Below the pieces are notes generated by a model. It did not search any database and had not been told where the DNA came from. It saw nothing but the letters and a program-made list of their open reading frames with translations. A program made the translations under genes and the position numbers. A DNA stretch of 64,000 bases from positions 62,001 through 126,000 of the IMG/VR virus record IMGVR_UViG_3300033997_000478; one strand, given 5' to 3'. Shown piece after piece: positions 1,240 through 24,734 of the stretch. Every line of letters starts with the position of its first letter. Position 1 is the first letter of the stretch.

Positions 1240-3639
1240 ATGAAACAGGTCAACGAACACCGCGCCGAATTGGCGTCCTCAGCATCGTTCAACCCGTTCA
1301 TCGCCCATGATTCCTCTGCCCGCGTGCAGATGATGGGCTCGCATCTTTCGCAAGCACTCCCCGTCAAGGATTGCCAACCGCGCCGGATTCTTACCGGCAT
1401 GGAACGGGAATTTGGCCGGGCCACGTTCAATGTCGAGATTCCGGTGGATGCGGAAATCATCGACATCATTCACAAGTTCACCGATACAGCCGGTGCAGGT
1501 GGTATTCGCATCAACCCCACCACCGTGATCATCTACATGGATGCTCGCACCAACCAGTTCGATGCCGTGGAGTTCAACAGCTACCACAGCATGCACCAGT
1601 CGTTCGGCTTCAACTTCGTCCGCACCCAGGCCATGCGCAACCTGCGTCCTGAGCAGTCGATCCCGGCCGGCACCGTACTGGGTCGTTCGCCGACACTGGA
1701 TGATCAGGACAACTACCGGATCGGTCTGAACGTCAAGTCGGCGTTCATGTCCATTCCCGGCGTTACCGAGGACGGCTTCATCGTCTCCGAAAGCCTGTGC
1801 AAGCGCATGACCACCACGTGCATCAAGAAGACCAGCTTCAGCTGGGGCAAGACGTGGTATCCGCTGAACTTGTACGGCGATGAGAAGAACTACAAGCCGA
1901 TGCCCGACATCGGTGATCGCATCCGTGACGATGGCCTGATCTGCACCCTGCGCCGCATGGACCAGGATACGGACATCATGTACTATCCGCTGGAGATGTC
2001 CAACGAAGCCCTGCAACGGGTGGACTACTTCTTCGACCAGCGCGTGTACGGCAAGAAGGGCGCCAAGGTGATCAACATCACCTCCCGCCACGGTCAGCGT
2101 GCATGGCCACGTACACCTGATGGCATGGAAGTGCAGGCCAAGAAGTACTACGACGCCGAGTGTGAGTTCCACCAGGCCATTCTGGACAGCCACCGCAAGT
2201 TGGCTCGTCGCTACGGCGATCGTGTGGCACTGGGTGGTACGTTCTCGATGTTGTTGCGCGAGGCCCGGCTGTTCCTGCCGTGCGAGCAGCGCGCCAAGTC
2301 GACCCAGATGTACCAGCTGCAACCGCTGGACGACTGGCGCATCGACCTGACCTACGAGTACGACTTCGTTCCGACCATCGGCTCCAAGCTGACCGGTCTG
2401 CATGGCGACAAGGGCGTGATCTGCCAGATCTGGCCGGACGAAGACATGCCGGTGGATGAGTGGGGCAATCGCGTTGAAGCGATCTCGCCTGCGTACTCCT
2501 CCATCGACCGCATGAACGATGGCCGACCGATCGAGCATGAGATCAATGGCTCGATGGAAATGATGACCGAGGCGGTTCGTATGGGCATGGGCGCACCGCT
2601 CAAGTTCATCGACCCGGCAACGCATCAGGCCATGCTGGAAGTGCGCGCCGAGCGTGAACGTCGTGGACTGCCGGTGCCCGATGGGCAGGTGGCCGCCGAA
2701 CAGATCGCAGCACGGATCAACGGCGACTACAACAACGCCTTCCACGAGGTCAAGGAGTACTACAAGACCATGTCCCCGAAGTTCGGTGCGATCTTCGATC
2801 GTCCGGATTACCTCAATGCAGGCGGTGGTGCGAAGTACCACATCGACGACCTGCTCAAGGATGGGATGTACTTGTGGGCACCGCTGGATACCCCCAAGAT
2901 CTGGCCGGATGTCATCGACGACATCGATCCGGATACCAAGGCGCGCATGATTGCTGAAAGCATCGTTGCCTCGGATCAGACCTTGGGCATGGTGGTCGGG
3001 GACAAGCAGCTCTACCCGGCACGCCGTTCGATCCTGCGGTTCCGTGGTCGCTCCGGCAAGATCCGTTTTACCGAAGAGCCGATCATGGTGGCTGATCTGT
3101 ACCACATCCTGCTGGAGAAAACCGGCAGCGACTGGTCCGGTGTATCCACGGCCTACCACCAGCACTTCGGCCTGCCAGCCAAGCAATCCAAGCAAGACCG
3201 TGATAGCAGTCCGGGTCGTGCCAATCCGGTGCGCATCTTCGGTGAGGCAGAAGTTCGCCTGACCAGTGCCGTGCTCGATAGCAAGATCGTGGCTGAGACC
3301 ATGGAAATGTCCACCAATCCTGCTGTGCACAAGAACGTGGTGTACAACATCCTCAAGGCACCCCAGCCGTCCAACATCGAAGAGGTGGTGGATCGCAGCA
3401 AGGTCCCGATCGGCAACAGCCGCTCGCAGTCGTTCGTGGCACACGGCCTGCAGTGCGCAGGTATCGAGCTGCGGTACGTCGACCATACCACCGAAGGCGA
3501 GGTCTATCCGGCCGATCCGGGTGGTGCTGCATCGGATCTGGGTCTACTCACTGGGGATGAGGAGGATGACGATGATGATGTCAATGAAAACGAGGACGGC
3601 GACGACAGTGCCGATGATGGCGATGACAGCGACGATTGA
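1240..3639 (+). CDS. Non-virion RNA polymerase beta subunit, C-terminal part (phiKZ gp71-73-like)
   Basis: SSARVQMMGSHLSQA (beta NRALMGSNMQRQA equivalent), GSKLTGLHGDKGVI (beta GDKxxGRHGNKG equivalent), RIFGEAE; acidic C-tail. Confidence 0.92.
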   Translation: MKQVNEHRAELASSASFNPFIAHDSSARVQMMGSHLSQALPVKDCQPRRILTGMEREFGRATFNVEIPVDAEIIDIIHKFTDTAGAGGIRINPTTVIIYMDARTNQFDAVEFNSYHSMHQSFGFNFVRTQAMRNLRPEQSIPAGTVLGRSPTLDDQDNYRIGLNVKSAFMSIPGVTEDGFIVSESLCKRMTTTCIKKTSFSWGKTWYPLNLYGDEKNYKPMPDIGDRIRDDGLICTLRRMDQDTDIMYYPLEMSNEALQRVDYFFDQRVYGKKGAKVINITSRHGQRAWPRTPDGMEVQAKKYYDAECEFHQAILDSHRKLARRYGDRVALGGTFSMLLREARLFLPCEQRAKSTQMYQLQPLDDWRIDLTYEYDFVPTIGSKLTGLHGDKGVICQIWPDEDMPVDEWGNRVEAISPAYSSIDRMNDGRPIEHEINGSMEMMTEAVRMGMGAPLKFIDPATHQAMLEVRAERERRGLPVPDGQVAAEQIAARINGDYNNAFHEVKEYYKTMSPKFGAIFDRPDYLNAGGGAKYHIDDLLKDGMYLWAPLDTPKIWPDVIDDIDPDTKARMIAESIVASDQTLGMVVGDKQLYPARRSILRFRGRSGKIRFTEEPIMVADLYHILLEKTGSDWSGVSTAYHQHFGLPAKQSKQDRDSSPGRANPVRIFGEAEVRLTSAVLDSKIVAETMEMSTNPAVHKNVVYNILKAPQPSNIEEVVDRSKVPIGNSRSQSFVAHGLQCAGIELRYVDHTTEGEVYPADPGGAASDLGLLTGDEEDDDDDVNENEDGDDSADDGDDSDD

Positions 3640-18914: not shown

Positions 18915-18971
18915 TTACGAGAAGACCTCGTCAAGATCCATATCGGCCGTGGTCAGGCTCTTACCGTGCAT
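18915..18971 (-). pseudogene. Displaced original 3' end of the virion RNAP beta' gene
   Basis: Encodes MHGKSLTTADMDLDEVFS*, 47/57 nt identical to 19806-19862, with GC3-rich codons. Confidence 0.85.
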
Positions 18972-19765
18972 CATTCCAGGTAGCGGTAGTCGTCACGTCG
19001 TGGATCGCGGACGCGGTTCCAAACAGTCTTTGGGTCGATACCGAGCTCACGTGCCGCGCCAGCCACACTATCGAACTGACGATTCTCAGCGATGACTTTC
19101 TTGGCAAACGGATTGTTCCCACCAGACCAAGCCTCTTTACTTCCCTCTTTACCCCAGCGGGTACTCTGACCCTCACGGATTTTCCTCGAGCGTTCAGCGA
19201 GCTGCTCAGGGGTCATTTCCTTCAGGGCCCGACGTCGCGCAACTGCCATCTTTTCTTTCATCCCCTCACGCCCCATCACGTGGGAGATAGGAGAACGAAC
19301 ATCGGTGACAGCATTTAACAGAAGCGACTTGTCAGCGTTGTCAATGCGCCGCTTCTCGTCTTCGTAGGCCTCCTCTCGGGTGCCAAAGACGAACACGGTC
19401 AGGGTCCATTTGTCCTCGCCAGGATCTTGATCCCACAGGGCCTGCATGGCTTTGTTGTTGTGCTTTCCTTTGCGCAGACTCCAGAAGTGCGAAGCTCTGC
19501 GGTTTTGGATGTTCTGCGTGCTACCCACATAGAAACGTCCTGTCGCTTTGTGGGTGAGCCAGTACGTATACCCGATCGGAATCTTCGCTTCCTCTGCGAC
19601 CTCCGGGTACACGCCATCGTCGAAGAGCCGCCATTGCGACCACTTCGGGTCTTCACTGTAGACGCGGGCAAGGATGTAAGTCTTACTCACACCCAGTGCC
19701 CGCGCAGCTTCAGCTACTGATTTATAGATCTTGTCGTCAATGGTGACGTTGAAATAGTTCCGCAT
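18971..19765 (-). CDS. Free-standing GIY-YIG homing endonuclease
   Basis: GYTYWL...FYVGSTQN...R..SH; NUMOD1-like motifs (YKSVAEAARALG, FDSVAGAARELG) at both ends. Confidence 0.9.
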   Translation of the reverse strand: MRNYFNVTIDDKIYKSVAEAARALGVSKTYILARVYSEDPKWSQWRLFDDGVYPEVAEEAKIPIGYTYWLTHKATGRFYVGSTQNIQNRRASHFWSLRKGKHNNKAMQALWDQDPGEDKWTLTVFVFGTREEAYEDEKRRIDNADKSLLLNAVTDVRSPISHVMGREGMKEKMAVARRRALKEMTPEQLAERSRKIREGQSTRWGKEGSKEAWSGGNNPFAKKVIAENRQFDSVAGAARELGIDPKTVWNRVRDPRRDDYRYLE

Positions 19766-19805: not shown

Positions 19806-21089
19806 CTAAGAAAATACTTCCTCAAGATCCATATCGGCTGTAGTTAAGCTCTTACCGTGCATCAATTTCATGAAGACATCCATGAGCAGCGAACCGATGG
19901 CTGCGGCGTACGTGCCCAGTGCCTGCGGGGTCGAAGCGATGCCCTCACCCATACAGCAGCGGCAGTAGTTGTTGGTGCCGGACGTACCTGCACCGGTCAG
20001 GCAGTAGGCCGGAGAACGCACGACGATCATCTCGCCGAACTTCTTCTGCACCGTCTGCTCATCGATCAGGATCGACTTACCGTTGATCAGCTCGTAATGG
20101 CCGATCAGGTACGGCTGGTTGATCTTGTCAATGCGCATGCGCAGGCCACGCTGACTGCCGCAGTCTTCCTTGTAGACCACCGAGTTCTGGTACATGCGGT
20201 TGTTGTTCTTCACCTCCACGCCGCCCAGTGCAGTCTGCGCACCACGACCATAGGAGCCGTCGCGCAGCTGGTTGATCATGGCCGGCAACTTCTTGATGTC
20301 CCAACCTTCGGCCAGCGAGGTGGTGATCAGATCCGGGTCCAGACCAAAGCCGGTGGAGAAGCCTTGCATGATGTACAGCTTGGCGCGCACCACGTCGTAG
20401 GCCTTGCCCTTGATGTAGAAGCGGGCACCTGGGTCGTTCTTCATCCAAGCCCGATCCATCGCGGTCAGTTCCTTCATGATCCCTGCCACGACCACCGGGT
20501 CGTGCAGTTCGTCCTTGTGCAGAGCCAGAAGCTCGTCACGACGCTTGATCATGTTCGGATCACAGGTCATCGTCTTGGGCGTGGCCGACGGCACGCACAG
20601 CTGGGAGAAGCCCGGCAACTGACCTGCAGCCATCTGGTAGCGCAGGAACTCGCTGGTGCGAATGGCGGTGGGATCATTAGAGCTATCGTCCCAGTGCTTT
20701 TCGATGATCTTCTCGATTGCACCGATACTGATCTCGCCATTCATGTAACCGATCTTGCTGCCGAAGGGCCAGACCAACAGAAGCTGGTTCACCAGCGCGG
20801 TGCCATAGGAGGTCACCACTGCTTCGGGCTGGTTCTTCAACGAACCGGCCGGCAGTTCCAGCTTACCCAGCGCCTTGAACACCGGTTGTTCCGGATCGGC
20901 ATCATCGATCAGTTCAAAACCACCTTCAGGCTTGTAGAACGCCCAGCGGTTGTCTTCGGTCTTGAACAGGCCGTACGGGTAAGGGTGGGGTTTGCCCGGA
21001 CGGAAGATGCTGAAGGCTTCCAACACCCAGCGCTTCCACAGGTAGTTCTCAGCCTGCAGGCAGAGCAGGAAATATTCGCGCTTGTTCAC
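19806..21089 (-). CDS. Virion RNA polymerase beta' fragment (phiKZ gp80-like)
   Basis: GRGAQTALGG, EDCGS, VRSPAYC, CRCCMG zinc motif, LMDVFMKLMH. Confidence 0.85.
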   Translation of the reverse strand: MNKREYFLLCLQAENYLWKRWVLEAFSIFRPGKPHPYPYGLFKTEDNRWAFYKPEGGFELIDDADPEQPVFKALGKLELPAGSLKNQPEAVVTSYGTALVNQLLLVWPFGSKIGYMNGEISIGAIEKIIEKHWDDSSNDPTAIRTSEFLRYQMAAGQLPGFSQLCVPSATPKTMTCDPNMIKRRDELLALHKDELHDPVVVAGIMKELTAMDRAWMKNDPGARFYIKGKAYDVVRAKLYIMQGFSTGFGLDPDLITTSLAEGWDIKKLPAMINQLRDGSYGRGAQTALGGVEVKNNNRMYQNSVVYKEDCGSQRGLRMRIDKINQPYLIGHYELINGKSILIDEQTVQKKFGEMIVVRSPAYCLTGAGTSGTNNYCRCCMGEGIASTPQALGTYAAAIGSLLMDVFMKLMHGKSLTTADMDLEEVFS

Positions 21090-22465: not shown

Positions 22466-24190
22466 ATGAGTGACGAAAACCAGACCCCCGAAACCCCCTC
22501 GCAGGGTTTCCTGGGTGAGACCAACCTCGACCAGAGTCCTGTACAGACTGAGACTCCGGTAGTGGAGGCCAAGCCGAGCGGTGCGATCATCGGCCTGGAA
22601 GCGGAGCCGGAATTCATCGACGTCGAAGAAGCCGTCGAACAGCCGGCTACCGAAGAAGCTGCCGAGCAGCCGACGCAGACCACCAAGGACGAGGTCGTGG
22701 CCATCCTGGTGCGCCGTGGCGTCAACCCCAATGCCGAATGCAACAAGGGCAGCCCGTCCAGCCCGCTGGACAAGAAGGACGCCTACCGCTTCCGTCCGGG
22801 CGAAGCCCTGGCTGTTCTGCCGGTGACCAACCAGGAACTGGAAGGTCTGCTGACCCACTACGAGAACATCGATCCGTCCAAGTCGGCACCGGGCCGCAAC
22901 TGGGTCAATACCGTCAGCGCCGGCCGTGACACCATTCCGCGTGGCGACACCGGCCTGGACGCACTGCTGCGCCCGGACAGCCTGTGGCGCCAGAGCGTGA
23001 CCTTCGACCCCAGCGACAAGGGTTCGATGGAACTGGGCGCGGGCGTGCCGCCGATCGGCGAGCGTGAAGGCAAGGGTACCCTGACCGGCGATACCGCCAT
23101 GCGCTACCTGAACCAGGTCCTGCACCGCGGTCAGTACGTGCGTGTGCCGCTGTGGCACTCGGGCATCTGGACCACCTTCCGTACCCCGGCCGAGCAGGAA
23201 CTGCTGGAGCTGGAACGTCGCGTGGCCAACGAGAAGATCACCCTGGGCCGCGTCACCAATGGTCTGGCGTACTCCAACGTCTCGATCTACCTCAATAGCT
23301 TCCTGTTCAACTTCGCGCTGGCACTGGTCACCGACGCCACCCTGCCGAACACGGACCTGAACACCCTCAAGGCCAACATCAAGGTCACTGACCTGCCGAT
23401 CCTGCTGTGGGCCATGCTGTGCACGATGTACCCCAAGGGCTACCGTCACCTGCGTCCGTGCGTGAACAACCCGGCCGCGTGCATGCACATCGTCGATGAA
23501 CTGCTGGACCTGTCCAAGCTCTGCTGGACCGACAACAGCTCCATCACCGAAGGTCAGCGCAAGCACATGCTCAAGCGCAACTCGAAGTTCACCGACATCG
23601 AGCTGACCAACTACCTCAGCAGCCATCGCAACAACCGCTACTCCACGATCAAGCTCGATGAGAGCGAGACCCACCTGACCGTGGTGGAACTGCGCGTACC
23701 GTCGCTGGCCGACTGGGAACGTTCGGGCACCTCGTGGGTGGACGGCATCGTGGCCAAGACCGACGCCGCCTTCGGCTCGCAGCTCAACGGCGAATCGCGC
23801 AACCAGTACATCATGGATGCGGCCGCTACCACCAGCCTGCGCCAGTACGGCCACTGGATCGAGCGTATCGTGATCACCGACAAGCGCAACAAGCGCCAGG
23901 AAGTGATCGATGACCGCGAGACCCTGGAGGAGACCATCGGTCATCTGTCGGGCAGCTCGCACATCCACGATGCGTTCTTCGAGGGTCTGAAGAACTACAT
24001 GAACGATGCGACGATCTCCCAGATCGCCATCCCACGCTACGCCTGTCCGGTCTGCGGCGCTGACCAGGGTGAAATCGATACGCCGGAGACGCTGATGCAT
24101 CCGCATCTGATTCCCCTCGACGTGGCGACGATTTTTTTTACCCTTCTCGACCAACGAGTGAGCCTGTTGTTGGATCAGGCCCGACTCTAA
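22466..24190 (+). CDS. Tail/baseplate assembly chaperone-like protein (T4 gp26 / lambda gpG analog)
   Basis: AAGGA RBS, ATG 22466; C-terminal CPVC motif and P.D...FF ending containing a T8 slippery run. Confidence 0.65.
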   Translation: MSDENQTPETPSQGFLGETNLDQSPVQTETPVVEAKPSGAIIGLEAEPEFIDVEEAVEQPATEEAAEQPTQTTKDEVVAILVRRGVNPNAECNKGSPSSPLDKKDAYRFRPGEALAVLPVTNQELEGLLTHYENIDPSKSAPGRNWVNTVSAGRDTIPRGDTGLDALLRPDSLWRQSVTFDPSDKGSMELGAGVPPIGEREGKGTLTGDTAMRYLNQVLHRGQYVRVPLWHSGIWTTFRTPAEQELLELERRVANEKITLGRVTNGLAYSNVSIYLNSFLFNFALALVTDATLPNTDLNTLKANIKVTDLPILLWAMLCTMYPKGYRHLRPCVNNPAACMHIVDELLDLSKLCWTDNSSITEGQRKHMLKRNSKFTDIELTNYLSSHRNNRYSTIKLDESETHLTVVELRVPSLADWERSGTSWVDGIVAKTDAAFGSQLNGESRNQYIMDAAATTSLRQYGHWIERIVITDKRNKRQEVIDDRETLEETIGHLSGSSHIHDAFFEGLKNYMNDATISQIAIPRYACPVCGADQGEIDTPETLMHPHLIPLDVATIFFTLLDQRVSLLLDQARL

Positions 24191-24675
24191 GCGATGACGA
24201 TCCGGAGGGGCACGTTCTGTACCCCTCCTTCGGTCAAGAGGAAACGCTCAACCTGACACCAGTGAAAAACCTGATGGCAGCGCTGCGTACCTTTGACCGA
24301 AAAGACCTCGACAGTATCAACACGCAGATCCTGCTGCGCGAACAGTACGACGAGGTCTTCCAGATCGCCAAGCATGGTGATCCCATGCGCCCGCTCTCCT
24401 TGGTGGCCAAACACCCCAAGGAGGATCTGTCCAATCGGGACTCGACCGCGCGAATGATGCGACGCTTTGGCGCGCTGAAGATCCGCGATCTGTTTGGGAT
24501 CTCATGGCCTGAGTTCATCAGGCAGTCACGGGCTGAAGTCGAGCAAATGTTCGAAGTGGCCGAGCATCTGGTGCTGGCCGAGAACAGTCGCCATGACGCC
24601 CTTCTCAACGCTCAGAAGAACGCTCAGCGTGAGAATGAGAGGGACATCCAGAACCTGCATAATCCCCCGACGTAA
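24139..24675 (+). CDS. Predicted -1 frameshift extension of the upstream chaperone (gpT / T4 gp51-like domain)
   Basis: The -1 frame is stop-free from the slippery site 24133-24139 to TAA 24675 (41 codons upstream of the GTG 24262 start in the track); FGISWPEFIRQSRAEVEQMFE motif. Confidence 0.7.
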   Translation, partial: YPSRPTSEPVVGSGPTLSDDDPEGHVLYPSFGQEETLNLTPVKNLMAALRTFDRKDLDSINTQILLREQYDEVFQIAKHGDPMRPLSLVAKHPKEDLSNRDSTARMMRRFGALKIRDLFGISWPEFIRQSRAEVEQMFEVAEHLVLAENSRHDALLNAQKNAQRENERDIQNLHNPPT

Positions 24676-24710
24676 GTCGGGGCTTTATGCTGCCAAAAAC
24701 GTTTGCAATG

Positions 24711-24734
24711 AAAAAAGTTTCATCGCTATAATAC
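24711..24734 (+). promoter_or_regulatory. Putative early (virion RNAP) promoter
   Basis: AAAAAAGTTTCATCGCTATAATAC; same motif at 42522 and 43867; resembles phiKZ early TATATTAC. Confidence 0.7.

Follow-up and report, generated by a model that had tools for sequence, protein, structure and literature searches.

The conserved -1 frameshift of tail assembly chaperone genes in long-tailed phages, exemplified by G and GT of phage lambda, is reportedly described by Xu, Hendrix and Duda (2004). In this system, two products share an N-terminal part, the upstream protein being of about 140 amino acids, and the longer form is made by a -1 shift on a slippery heptamer (G_GGA_AAG in lambda) located a few codons before the stop of the upstream ORF. 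The downstream ORF lacks its own start, no strong stimulatory structure is needed, the gene pair lies between the tail-tube and tape-measure genes, and the arrangement is conserved although the sequences diverge. In E. coli dnaX and in IS elements, a tandem-slippage heptamer of the type X_XXY_YYZ is read by one tRNA species in both ribosomal sites, giving a fixed ratio of two proteins from one gene; these sites depend on an upstream SD-like element and a downstream hairpin. A third system relevant here is T4 gp26 (Pfam PF12322), listed as 'Hub assembly chaperone' (PMC3004832, Table 2), which is not frameshifted and is followed by gene 25 with its own ATG.

Here we analyzed a stretch of 64,000 nucleotides (64 kb) of the IMG/VR virus record IMGVR_UViG_3300033997_000478, hereafter the window. 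It carries a gene of the phiKZ gp077 family (gene A) that has a run of eight T's near its end and is followed by a small ORF (B) in the -1 frame. The comparative data indicate that this run is probably a programmed -1 frameshift site, which is conserved in almost all of about 65 related phiKZ-like, nucleus-forming jumbo phages and would add a 178-residue extension (B') to a fraction of the protein. This extension is currently annotated as a separate small gene with an arbitrary start. The features of the locus are compiled in the table.

Table. Position and supporting data of the features at the gene A-B' locus (window coordinates).
Position	Strand	Feature	Supporting data
22466..24190	+	Gene A; ATG 22466, TAA 24188-90; 0-frame product of 574 aa; family of phiKZ gp077, PhiPA3 gp074, 201phi2-1 gp136 and RAY gp267, a core gene of phiKZ-like jumbo phages	phrog_4585, E 2.8e-106, residues 34-572; tblastn finds it in 217 phage records; AlphaFold model pLDDT 80.9, residues 1-79 disordered
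24044..24055	+	CPVC motif (Cys527 and Cys530); together with the conserved Cys332 and Cys339 probably a four-Cys zinc site (inferred)	C332, C339, C527 and C530 invariant in the rebuilt alignment of A (A2); analogous pair of Cys pairs in the T4 gp26 family (C82/C84 and C187/C190)
24133..24139	+	Slippery heptamer T_TTT_TTT in phase with gene A (codons 556-558, ATT TTT TTT), inside the T8 run 24132-24139	T_TTT_TTN in phase in 58 of 61 non-redundant orthologous loci; synonymous-site statistics (see text)
24139..24190	+	Dual-coding overlap; 0 frame: C-terminal helix of A (TLLDQRVSLLLDQARL, then stop); -1 frame: start of the extension (YPSRPTSEPVVGSGPTL)	0-frame tail conserved (A2 consensus FFTLLGQR); synonymous divergence in the -1 frame depressed, pS 0.24 against 0.64-0.69 elsewhere; C-terminal helix at residues 553-573 in the model
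24191..24261	+	Conserved part of the -1 frame without start codon (SDDDPEGHVLYPSFGQEETLNLTP), with the near-invariant Phe of the GHV..P.FG motif	No ATG, GTG or TTG; F31 conserved in more than 90% of 43 sequences; pN/pS 0.19 in the equivalent region of 14 pairs; phrog_12109 aligns from residue 18 of the -1 translation
24139..24675	+	-1 frame extension B', 178 codons plus TAA stop at 24673-75; the previously called ORF (GTG 24262..24675) is its C-terminal 137 aa	phrog_12109, E 3.8e-23; AlphaFold model pLDDT 87, an unstructured linker of about 30 residues followed by a helical domain ending in a long helix (131-174); family of 1588 clusters at 50% identity
24146..24180	+	Two small hairpins, 24146-58 and 24162-80; present but weak and not conserved	-2.3 and -6.1 kcal/mol; RNAalifold consensus energy -7.1 kcal/mol with an unfavourable covariation term of +0.38; z = +0.33 for the 80 nt after the site
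24665..24682	+	Terminator-like hairpin (CCCCGAC GTAA GTCGGGG followed by CTTTAT) over the stop codon of B'; probably marks the end of the transcription unit	Consensus scan only

The site had been proposed from the sequence alone, and the underlying observation proved to be real. The 0-frame codons ATT TTT TTT ACC lie at 24131-24142. The -1 frame is open from 24073 (TGA at 24070-72) and translates as had been stated (YPSRPTSEPVVGSGPTLSDDDPEGHVLYPSFGQ...), its first ATG, GTG or TTG being GTG 24262, at codon 42 after the site, without a Shine-Dalgarno sequence at a usable distance. The predicted products of 574 aa and 558+178 = 736 aa are likewise correct. However, gene A does not end at the T-run, as the sequence-only reading had it, but continues for 16 more sense codons (TLLDQRVSLLLDQARL). 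Gene A contains 2 TTT versus 12 TTC codons and 3 ATT versus 27 ATC codons, and both TTT codons and one ATT are at the site. The T8 is the only run of seven or more T or A in the window on either strand. As shuffled sequences give 2.7 T7 matches on average, the single sequence is not significant by itself; the significance comes from conservation across relatives.

Orthologous loci were compared. A near-identity DNA search in the phage collection gave no match, and a single-protein scan of IMG/VR returned only the contig of the window itself. A first family alignment was too divergent for locus finding and was rebuilt. Between 60 and 61 non-redundant orthologous loci (16 isolates plus metagenomes) were evaluated. 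ORF B lies in the -1 frame of A in 16 of 16 isolate loci, spanning Pseudomonas, Xanthomonas, Erwinia, Klebsiella, Serratia, Salmonella, Ralstonia, Proteus and Bacillus phages, and in 5 further isolates as well. Among the 61 loci the site reads TTTTTTT in 35, TTTTTTC in 20, TTTTTTA in 2 and TTTTTTG in 1, whereas 3 have a hexamer only. The T-run is kept even where the amino acids change, for example in V-F-L encoded as GTT TTT TTG or GTT TTT TTA. The first Phe codon is TTT in 60 of 60 loci, while usage in the rest of gene A predicts 23.9, and the preceding codon ends in T in 57 of 60 loci, across Val, Ile, Leu, Thr, Ala and Gly codons, with 16.1 expected. These loci are phylogenetically related, so that the counts are not independent events, and since the FF motif is itself conserved at the protein level, including in T4 gp26, part of the T-richness is forced by the amino acids.

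After the site, the 0 frame ends within 9-37 codons (median 16), the -1 frame runs for 138-182 codons (median 163.5), and the +1 frame has a median of 11.5. In 15 of 60 loci the nearest upstream stop in the -1 frame is within 15 nt of the heptamer. No ATG, GTG or TTG is present in the first 40 codons of the -1 frame in 26 of 60 loci; in phiKZ the first is at codon 85 of 165, in AgentSmith at 87 and in RAY at 68. GTG 24262 of the window is ATC or GTC in relatives about 83-86% identical in protein A, and the GTG that some relatives carry at the V of GHV is GTT in this clade. In the rest of B', pN/pS is 0.34, as compared to the lower value of the start-less segment, and the depressed synonymous divergence in the overlap is as expected for dual coding. 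Database proteins of the B family start at profile positions scattered from 1 to 64, the signature of arbitrary start calls. No in-frame A-B fusion, which would prove that the fusion is functional, was found among 56 A relatives or among the best 150 B representatives, so both the stop and the shift are kept.

Not all loci conform to this pattern. Three Pseudomonas phages of the PhiPA3 group have only a hexamer (G or A before TTT_TTY), and Vibrio phage pVa-21 has CTT_TTT_ACG. These do have start codons ahead of the conserved motif, so initiation may replace or add to shifting there. The deposited RTH11 genome has T7, which fits neither frame. Furthermore, no stimulatory element was found, although such elements are common but not obligatory at sites of this type. 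The sequence-only reading had proposed that the two small hairpins, through complementary loops, form a kissing or pseudoknot stimulator, but this is not supported. The 80 nt after the site fold no better than shuffles, downstream folding in the family is not above control windows (mean z -0.74 against -0.42; 45-nt MFE -9.0 against -7.8 kcal/mol), RNAalifold revealed no covariation, and an SD-like 4-mer upstream occurs at 0.10 against 0.07 in controls. In this respect the locus differs from dnaX and the IS elements, with which it would share a tandem-slippage heptamer read by one tRNA species in both ribosomal sites and a fixed ratio of two proteins from one gene, as neither of their stimulators is detectable or conserved here.

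As compared to lambda G/GT, the locus shares the predicted production of a short and a long form with a common N-terminal part by a -1 shift near the 3' end of the first ORF, a downstream ORF without its own start, the lack of a strong stimulatory structure, and an arrangement that is conserved although the sequences diverge. However, the upstream protein is four times larger, carries a four-Cys site, and the heptamer is U_UUU_UUY. Pfam and NCBIfam searches with A and B' gave no hit, and Foldseek matches of A to tail assembly chaperones have E-values of about 1-3 only. The gene pair does not lie between tail-tube and tape-measure genes; the neighbours are homologues of the phiKZ gp078 and gp079 genes, an RNA polymerase beta subunit gene and a gene for a 972-aa phrog_3248 protein, and no tape-measure gene is adjacent. 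Thus, the equivalence to lambda G/GT put forward in the sequence-only reading is an analogy of expression strategy, and membership is not shown.

The label "gp26-like" for A is only weakly supported. Foldseek matches the model of A to a protein annotated as a T4-like baseplate hub assembly protein (E 3.2e-5, TM 0.47 on the target), and hhalign lines up A residues 464-533 with gp26 residues 135-193 through the ..IAIP.CPxC motif, albeit with a probability of only 12.9% (E 0.0022). Both families have two conserved Cys pairs and a conserved FF close to the C-terminus (F557 and F558 in A, F204 and F205 in gp26). On the other hand, A is about 2.7 times longer, the window protein has no hit to PF12322, and this model matches 1 of 30 members at E 0.27. 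T4 encodes its FF as TTC TTT and has no extension, and a frameshift at the homologous FF of gene 26 was rejected. The label "gp51/gpT-like" for the extension fails: hhalign of alignment A4 against T4 gp51 gives a probability of 0.09%, Foldseek finds only orthologues, and in T4 the genes 26 and 51 are transcribed divergently. A Foldseek search of A against the PDB found nothing, and no solved-structure chain matches the sequence profile of either A or B', which is only an indirect hint that both forms may be absent from virions, as lambda-type tail assembly chaperones are.

Taken together, the interpretation given in the sequence-only reading is partly supported: its core claim of a programmed -1 shift at the T-run fusing gene A to the downstream ORF is strongly supported by comparative evidence that it did not have, whereas its stimulator and its gp51/gpT assignment are not. 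We consider it likely that gene A and the downstream ORF are one recoded gene. In this view, most ribosomes would read gene A in the 0 frame and terminate at 24188-90, giving a protein that ends in an amphipathic helix. A fraction would shift when the two Phe codons of U_UUU_UUU sit in the P and A sites, the two Phe-tRNAs slipping back one base and re-pairing with UUU UUU, and would continue in the -1 frame (Y-P-S-R-P...) to 24673-75. In the resulting 736-aa protein, the last 16 residues of A would be replaced by a linker of about 30 residues and a helical domain of about 130 residues. The downstream ORF, having no initiation site of its own in this phage, would be made only as the fusion, and the arrangement would be ancestral and almost universal in phiKZ-like (Chimalliviridae-type) jumbo phages. 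The analysis itself establishes the anatomy of the sequence, its conservation, and selection on the -1 frame upstream of any start codon; the existence of the trans-frame product, the ribosomal nature of the shift, its efficiency and the function of the proteins are inferred from these data, without experimental evidence. Tentatively, A may be a distant relative of the T4 gp26 baseplate-hub assembly chaperone, and a fixed ratio of short to long form would then serve assembly, as the G and GT forms do in lambda. A more far-reaching and rather doubtful possibility is that the gp077 family is the jumbo-phage counterpart of gp26 and its family-wide frameshift a second, independent case of the chaperone-plus-extended-chaperone logic of lambda G/GT. 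This would make it the missing frameshifted tail or baseplate assembly chaperone of phiKZ-like phages, with the helical extension acting as the adaptor to a structural partner.

Ribosomal frameshifting is the most likely mechanism, but transcriptional slippage, although unlikely, is not excluded. Stuttering on the T-run by the host RNA polymerase or by the phage's own multisubunit RNA polymerases, whose slippage behaviour is not known, would add one U in a fraction of the mRNAs and give the identical 736-aa fusion, so that none of the comparative evidence separates the two mechanisms. The window and many relatives have T8, a length at which bacterial RNA polymerases slip on U-runs, for example in Shigella mxiE, and the lack of a detectable ribosomal stimulator is also compatible with this view. 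However, the conserved minimal unit is exactly the in-phase heptamer, and the 20 of 61 loci with T_TTT_TTC have only T6-T7 in all, with some loci having T5-T6, which is short for efficient transcriptional slippage. If run length were the selected feature, longer runs or out-of-phase extensions would be expected, yet none exceeds T8.

That B is instead an ordinary gene started independently, at GTG 24262, ATG 24274 or a non-canonical codon such as CTG 24217, with the T-run merely encoding a conserved Phe-Phe, appears very unlikely. In favour of this, FF is conserved even in the T4 gp26 family, where no shift occurs, some relatives have a GTG at the V of the GHV motif, preceded in RTH11 by GAGGAGG, the PhiPA3-group phages have start codons ahead of the conserved motif, and an SD-like GGAGGGG lies 9 nt before CTG 24217. 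However, independent initiation explains neither the invariant TTT at the first Phe nor the T at the preceding wobble position. B is always in the -1 frame and that frame is always open back to the T-run, the start-less segment is under purifying selection, and a near-invariant Phe lies upstream of every possible start in the window. In addition, GTG 24262 is not conserved in the relatives mentioned above, and neither candidate start has an SD at a usable distance, whereas neighbouring genes do. Least probable is a sequencing or assembly artefact in which a true T9 would make A and B one ordinary 736-aa ORF. Homopolymers are error-prone, and the frame is broken in the deposited RTH11 genome. 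However, T8 is also present in many relatives, among them the independent assemblies L057 (98% identical) and L084 and L086 (about 83-86% identical in protein A). Moreover, the 0-frame tail and its stop are conserved across the family, with phrog_4585 aligning to residue 572 of 574, and no fused ORF occurs among the relatives examined.

In the library searched, we found no published description of the site and no functional data for the family, the one relevant item being that PHIKZ077 is detected in infected-cell proteomics; "gp77" in the Goslar and PCH45 papers refers to unrelated genes. If confirmed, the frameshift would change the annotation of a core gene pair in more than 200 sequenced phiKZ-like phages, including the model phages phiKZ, PhiPA3, 201phi2-1, RAY and SPN3US. 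The downstream small ORF, with starts that differ from genome to genome, would be the C-terminal domain of a longer form of the upstream protein. Knock-down, transposon and localisation experiments on either ORF would need to be reinterpreted, because disrupting A would also remove B. The site also gives a concrete handle on a conserved protein of unknown function, through mutants locked in the 0 frame and fusion-only mutants. At least within the literature that could be searched, it would be the first recoding event described for this family and would extend two-form expression by frameshift beyond the classical tail chaperone genes.

The feature that underlies this analysis was confirmed in the sequence. 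Gene A, encoded on the 324 kb long IMG/VR contig IMGVR_UViG_3300033997_000478, contains an in-phase T_TTT_TTT heptamer within a run of eight T residues (T8). In contrast to the sequence-only reading, gene A does not end there, as sixteen more sense codons follow (TLLDQRVSLLLDQARL), which in the AlphaFold model form most of a C-terminal helix spanning residues 553-573. Read from position 24139 the -1 frame gives 178 residues, exactly as had been proposed, and this frame contains no ATG, GTG or TTG before GTG 24262. Neither this GTG nor ATG 24274 has a Shine-Dalgarno (SD) sequence at a usable distance, although the neighbouring genes do. Gene A uses TTC 12 times and TTT twice, and ATC 27 times and ATT three times, with both TTT codons and one ATT located at the site. 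The T8 is the only run of seven or more T or A in the 64-kb window. However, shuffled sequences give 2.7 T7 matches on average, so that the single sequence is not significant alone.

Coordinates of the features described in the text (L numbers denote collected loci)
Sequence	Position	Strand	Feature
Window	18971-19765	-	Homing-endonuclease-like ORF (phrog_314, E 1.7e-23)
Window	19806-21089	-	RNA polymerase beta subunit gene (phrog_2962), directly next to the preceding ORF
Window	22466-24190		Gene A, 574 aa (ATG 22466, TAA 24188-90)
Window	24073-24675		Open -1 frame (TAA 24673-75)
Window	24131-24139		Codons 556-558 of gene A, ATT TTT TTT
Window	24133-24139		Heptamer T_TTT_TTT
Window	24141-24147		CCCUUCU, one base after the heptamer
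Window	24203-24209		SD-like GGAGGGG
Window	24262		GTG, first ATG, GTG or TTG of the -1 frame
Window	24274		ATG
Window	24665-24682		Terminator-like hairpin over the stop codon of the extension
Window	24703-24732		Near-consensus sigma-70-like promoter (TTGCAA, 18 nt, TATAAT)
Window	24792		ATG of the next gene
L001 (Xanthomonas phage RTH11, OQ790161)	2495-2501		T7 run
L006 (phiKZ)	2685-2927		PHIKZ076.4
L012 (Erwinia phage RAY)	2256-2804		gp266
L083 (T4)	2803-3429	-	gp26

Protein A matches phrog_4585 (E 2.8e-106) over residues 34-572, and the 0-frame product is therefore a full-length family member. A tblastn search found A in 217 phage records, including phiKZ (gp077), PhiPA3 (gp074), RAY (gp267), SPN3US, Eowyn, Ralstonia and Vibrio jumbo phages and Bacillus phage AgentSmith. 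The -1 translation matches phrog_12109 from its residue 18, which is upstream of the annotated start, and its tblastn alignments to relatives begin at residue 1 and span two annotated genes. The start-less ORF was dealt with in opposite ways by annotators, as RAY gp266 is started 135 nt inside gp267, whereas PHIKZ076.4 is cut down to the last 80 codons of a 165-codon open frame. In the window, the terminator-like hairpin over the stop codon of the extension (B') is followed by the sigma-70-like promoter ahead of the next gene.

To test the frameshift comparatively, the annotated regions of 16 usable isolate loci were collected, together with that of RTH11, whose deposited run breaks the frame. 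A metagenome scan added 65 loci, and five more isolates were included later. In 16 of 16 isolates the downstream ORF lies in the -1 frame of A, and that frame is open back to the T-run. In 58 complete non-redundant loci the 0 frame ends 9-37 codons after the site (median 16), while the -1 frame continues for 138-182 codons (median 163.5) and the +1 frame has a median of 11.5 codons. In 15 of 60 loci the -1 frame opens within 15 nt upstream of the heptamer. Among 61 non-redundant loci the heptamer is TTTTTTT in 35, TTTTTTC in 20, TTTTTTA in two and TTTTTTG in one, whereas three loci, those of PhiPA3, PS119XW and D6, have only a hexamer. The loci share ancestry and these and the following counts are not independent, but they do span protein identities down to about 20-25%.

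The synonymous positions of the site were analyzed next. The first Phe codon is TTT in 60 of 60 loci, while usage in the rest of gene A predicts 23.9. The preceding codon ends in T in 57 of 60 loci, against 16.1 expected from synonymous usage, and this holds across GTT, ATT, CTT, ACT, GCT and GGT. The run also survives amino acid changes, as in F-L encoded by TTT TTG or TTT TTA. Furthermore, 26 of 60 loci have no canonical start in the first 40 codons of the -1 frame, and in phiKZ the first one is found at codon 85 of 165. In metagenomic relatives about 83-86% identical in protein A, GTG 24262 of the window is replaced by ATC or GTC, whereas the T8 and the GTT at the V of the GHV motif are the same as in the window. 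Over 14 pairs at 50-91% identity, pN/pS in the -1 frame is 0.19 in the segment between the stop of A and the first start codon and 0.34 in the rest of B'. In the overlap, synonymous divergence is depressed (pS 0.24 against 0.64-0.69), as expected for dual coding. A Phe in the start-less segment is conserved in more than 90% of the sequences.

Fusions of the two ORFs were not found among the relatives examined. The lengths of 56 A relatives are 492-587 aa, with the 627-aa ORF of RTH11 as the one exception. The 150 best of 1588 representatives of the B family are 102-182 aa long, and their first residues align to profile positions scattered from 1 to 64, which is what arbitrary start calls produce.

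The simplest reading of these data is a tandem -1 slippage of two Phe-tRNAs on U_UUU_UUY, which would give A and, at some fixed lower frequency, the A-B' fusion. A stimulatory element was not found. The two hairpins proposed by the sequence-only reading have energies of -2.3 and -6.1 kcal/mol. The 80 nt after the site have a z-score of +0.33 in the window, and the family mean is -0.74 compared to -0.42 for control windows inside gene A. RNAalifold on nine close relatives gave -7.1 kcal/mol with an unfavourable covariation term, and SD-like 4-mers upstream are no more frequent than in controls. CCCUUCU is complementary to the SD-like GGAGGGG about 60 nt downstream, and this pairing is kept in most of the close clade, but without covariation. 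It starts too close to the slip site to act as a classical stimulator and might instead mask the SD-like sequence. Many phage G/GT-type sites also work without stimulators.

Transcriptional slippage on the U-run would give the same protein and cannot be excluded. However, the conserved unit is exactly the in-phase heptamer, and a third of the loci have only T6-T7, both arguing for the ribosome. In some lineages shifting may be partly or wholly replaced by independent initiation. PhiPA3, PS119XW and D6 (G or A before TTT_TTY) and pVa-21, one of the additional isolates (CTT_TTT_ACG), have degenerate sites and are also the phages with start codons ahead of the conserved GH..FG motif, suggesting a lineage-specific move from frameshifting towards independent initiation. 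The deposited RTH11 genome has T7 where its closest relatives have T8, which puts the tail of A out of frame, so that the annotated 627-aa ORF runs on in a third frame full of Arg, Ala and Gly. This is most likely a homopolymer sequencing error, or possibly a real length heterogeneity at the slippery run.

With regard to function, the model of A is confident (pLDDT 80.9) but gave no match in the PDB. In BFVD it matches its jumbo-phage orthologues and, more remotely, a protein annotated as a T4-like baseplate hub assembly protein (E 3.2e-5). A profile of the T4 gp26 family aligns weakly with residues 464-533 of A (probability 12.9%), and Pfam PF12322 is not matched. T4 gp26 is listed as a hub assembly chaperone (PMC3004832). 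Its family has two conserved Cys pairs and ends in a conserved KEFF, the same layout as the C-terminal part of gene A with its own two conserved Cys pairs and C-terminal FF. T4 itself encodes its FF as TTC TTT and has no extension, and T4 gene 25 starts in the -1 frame by a TAATG overlap four codons after the FF. B' is predicted to be a flexible linker followed by a helical domain (pLDDT 87). It matches only its orthologues and does not match T4 gp51, to which the sequence-only reading had likened it. Thus, a role as a two-form assembly chaperone is a reasonable hypothesis and no more, and gene A is not located in a tail module.

A full-text literature search on frameshifting, slippery sites and chaperones in Chimalliviridae, phiKZ and jumbo phages, including core-genome, essential-gene, proteomics and structure papers, found no description of the site, although the literature covered was incomplete and its novelty is therefore provisional. 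In the phiKZ co-fractionation proteomics table (PMC10449902, supplementary file 6) the same column, which we read as the number of elution peaks, gives 2 for both PHIKZ077 and PHIKZ078, and PHIKZ076.4 is not listed in the part of the file examined.

Overall, the T-run and the open -1 frame noted from the sequence alone are real. The interpretation attached to them is partly supported, as the comparative data support the -1 shift, whereas neither the stimulatory hairpins nor the gp51-like label of the extension is supported. While the arrangement of the reading frames, its conservation and the selection on the start-less part of the -1 frame are shown by the analysis, the production of the fusion, the ribosomal nature and frequency of the shift and the function of its products are inferred from sequence and predicted structures. 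It is highly likely that translation enters the -1 frame at the T-run and probable that the shift is ribosomal, whereas the assembly-chaperone function remains tentative. Frameshift sites of the G/GT type are already established in phages, and the results presented here suggest very strongly that an ancient and nearly universal recoding site is also present in this core gene of phiKZ-like jumbo phages.
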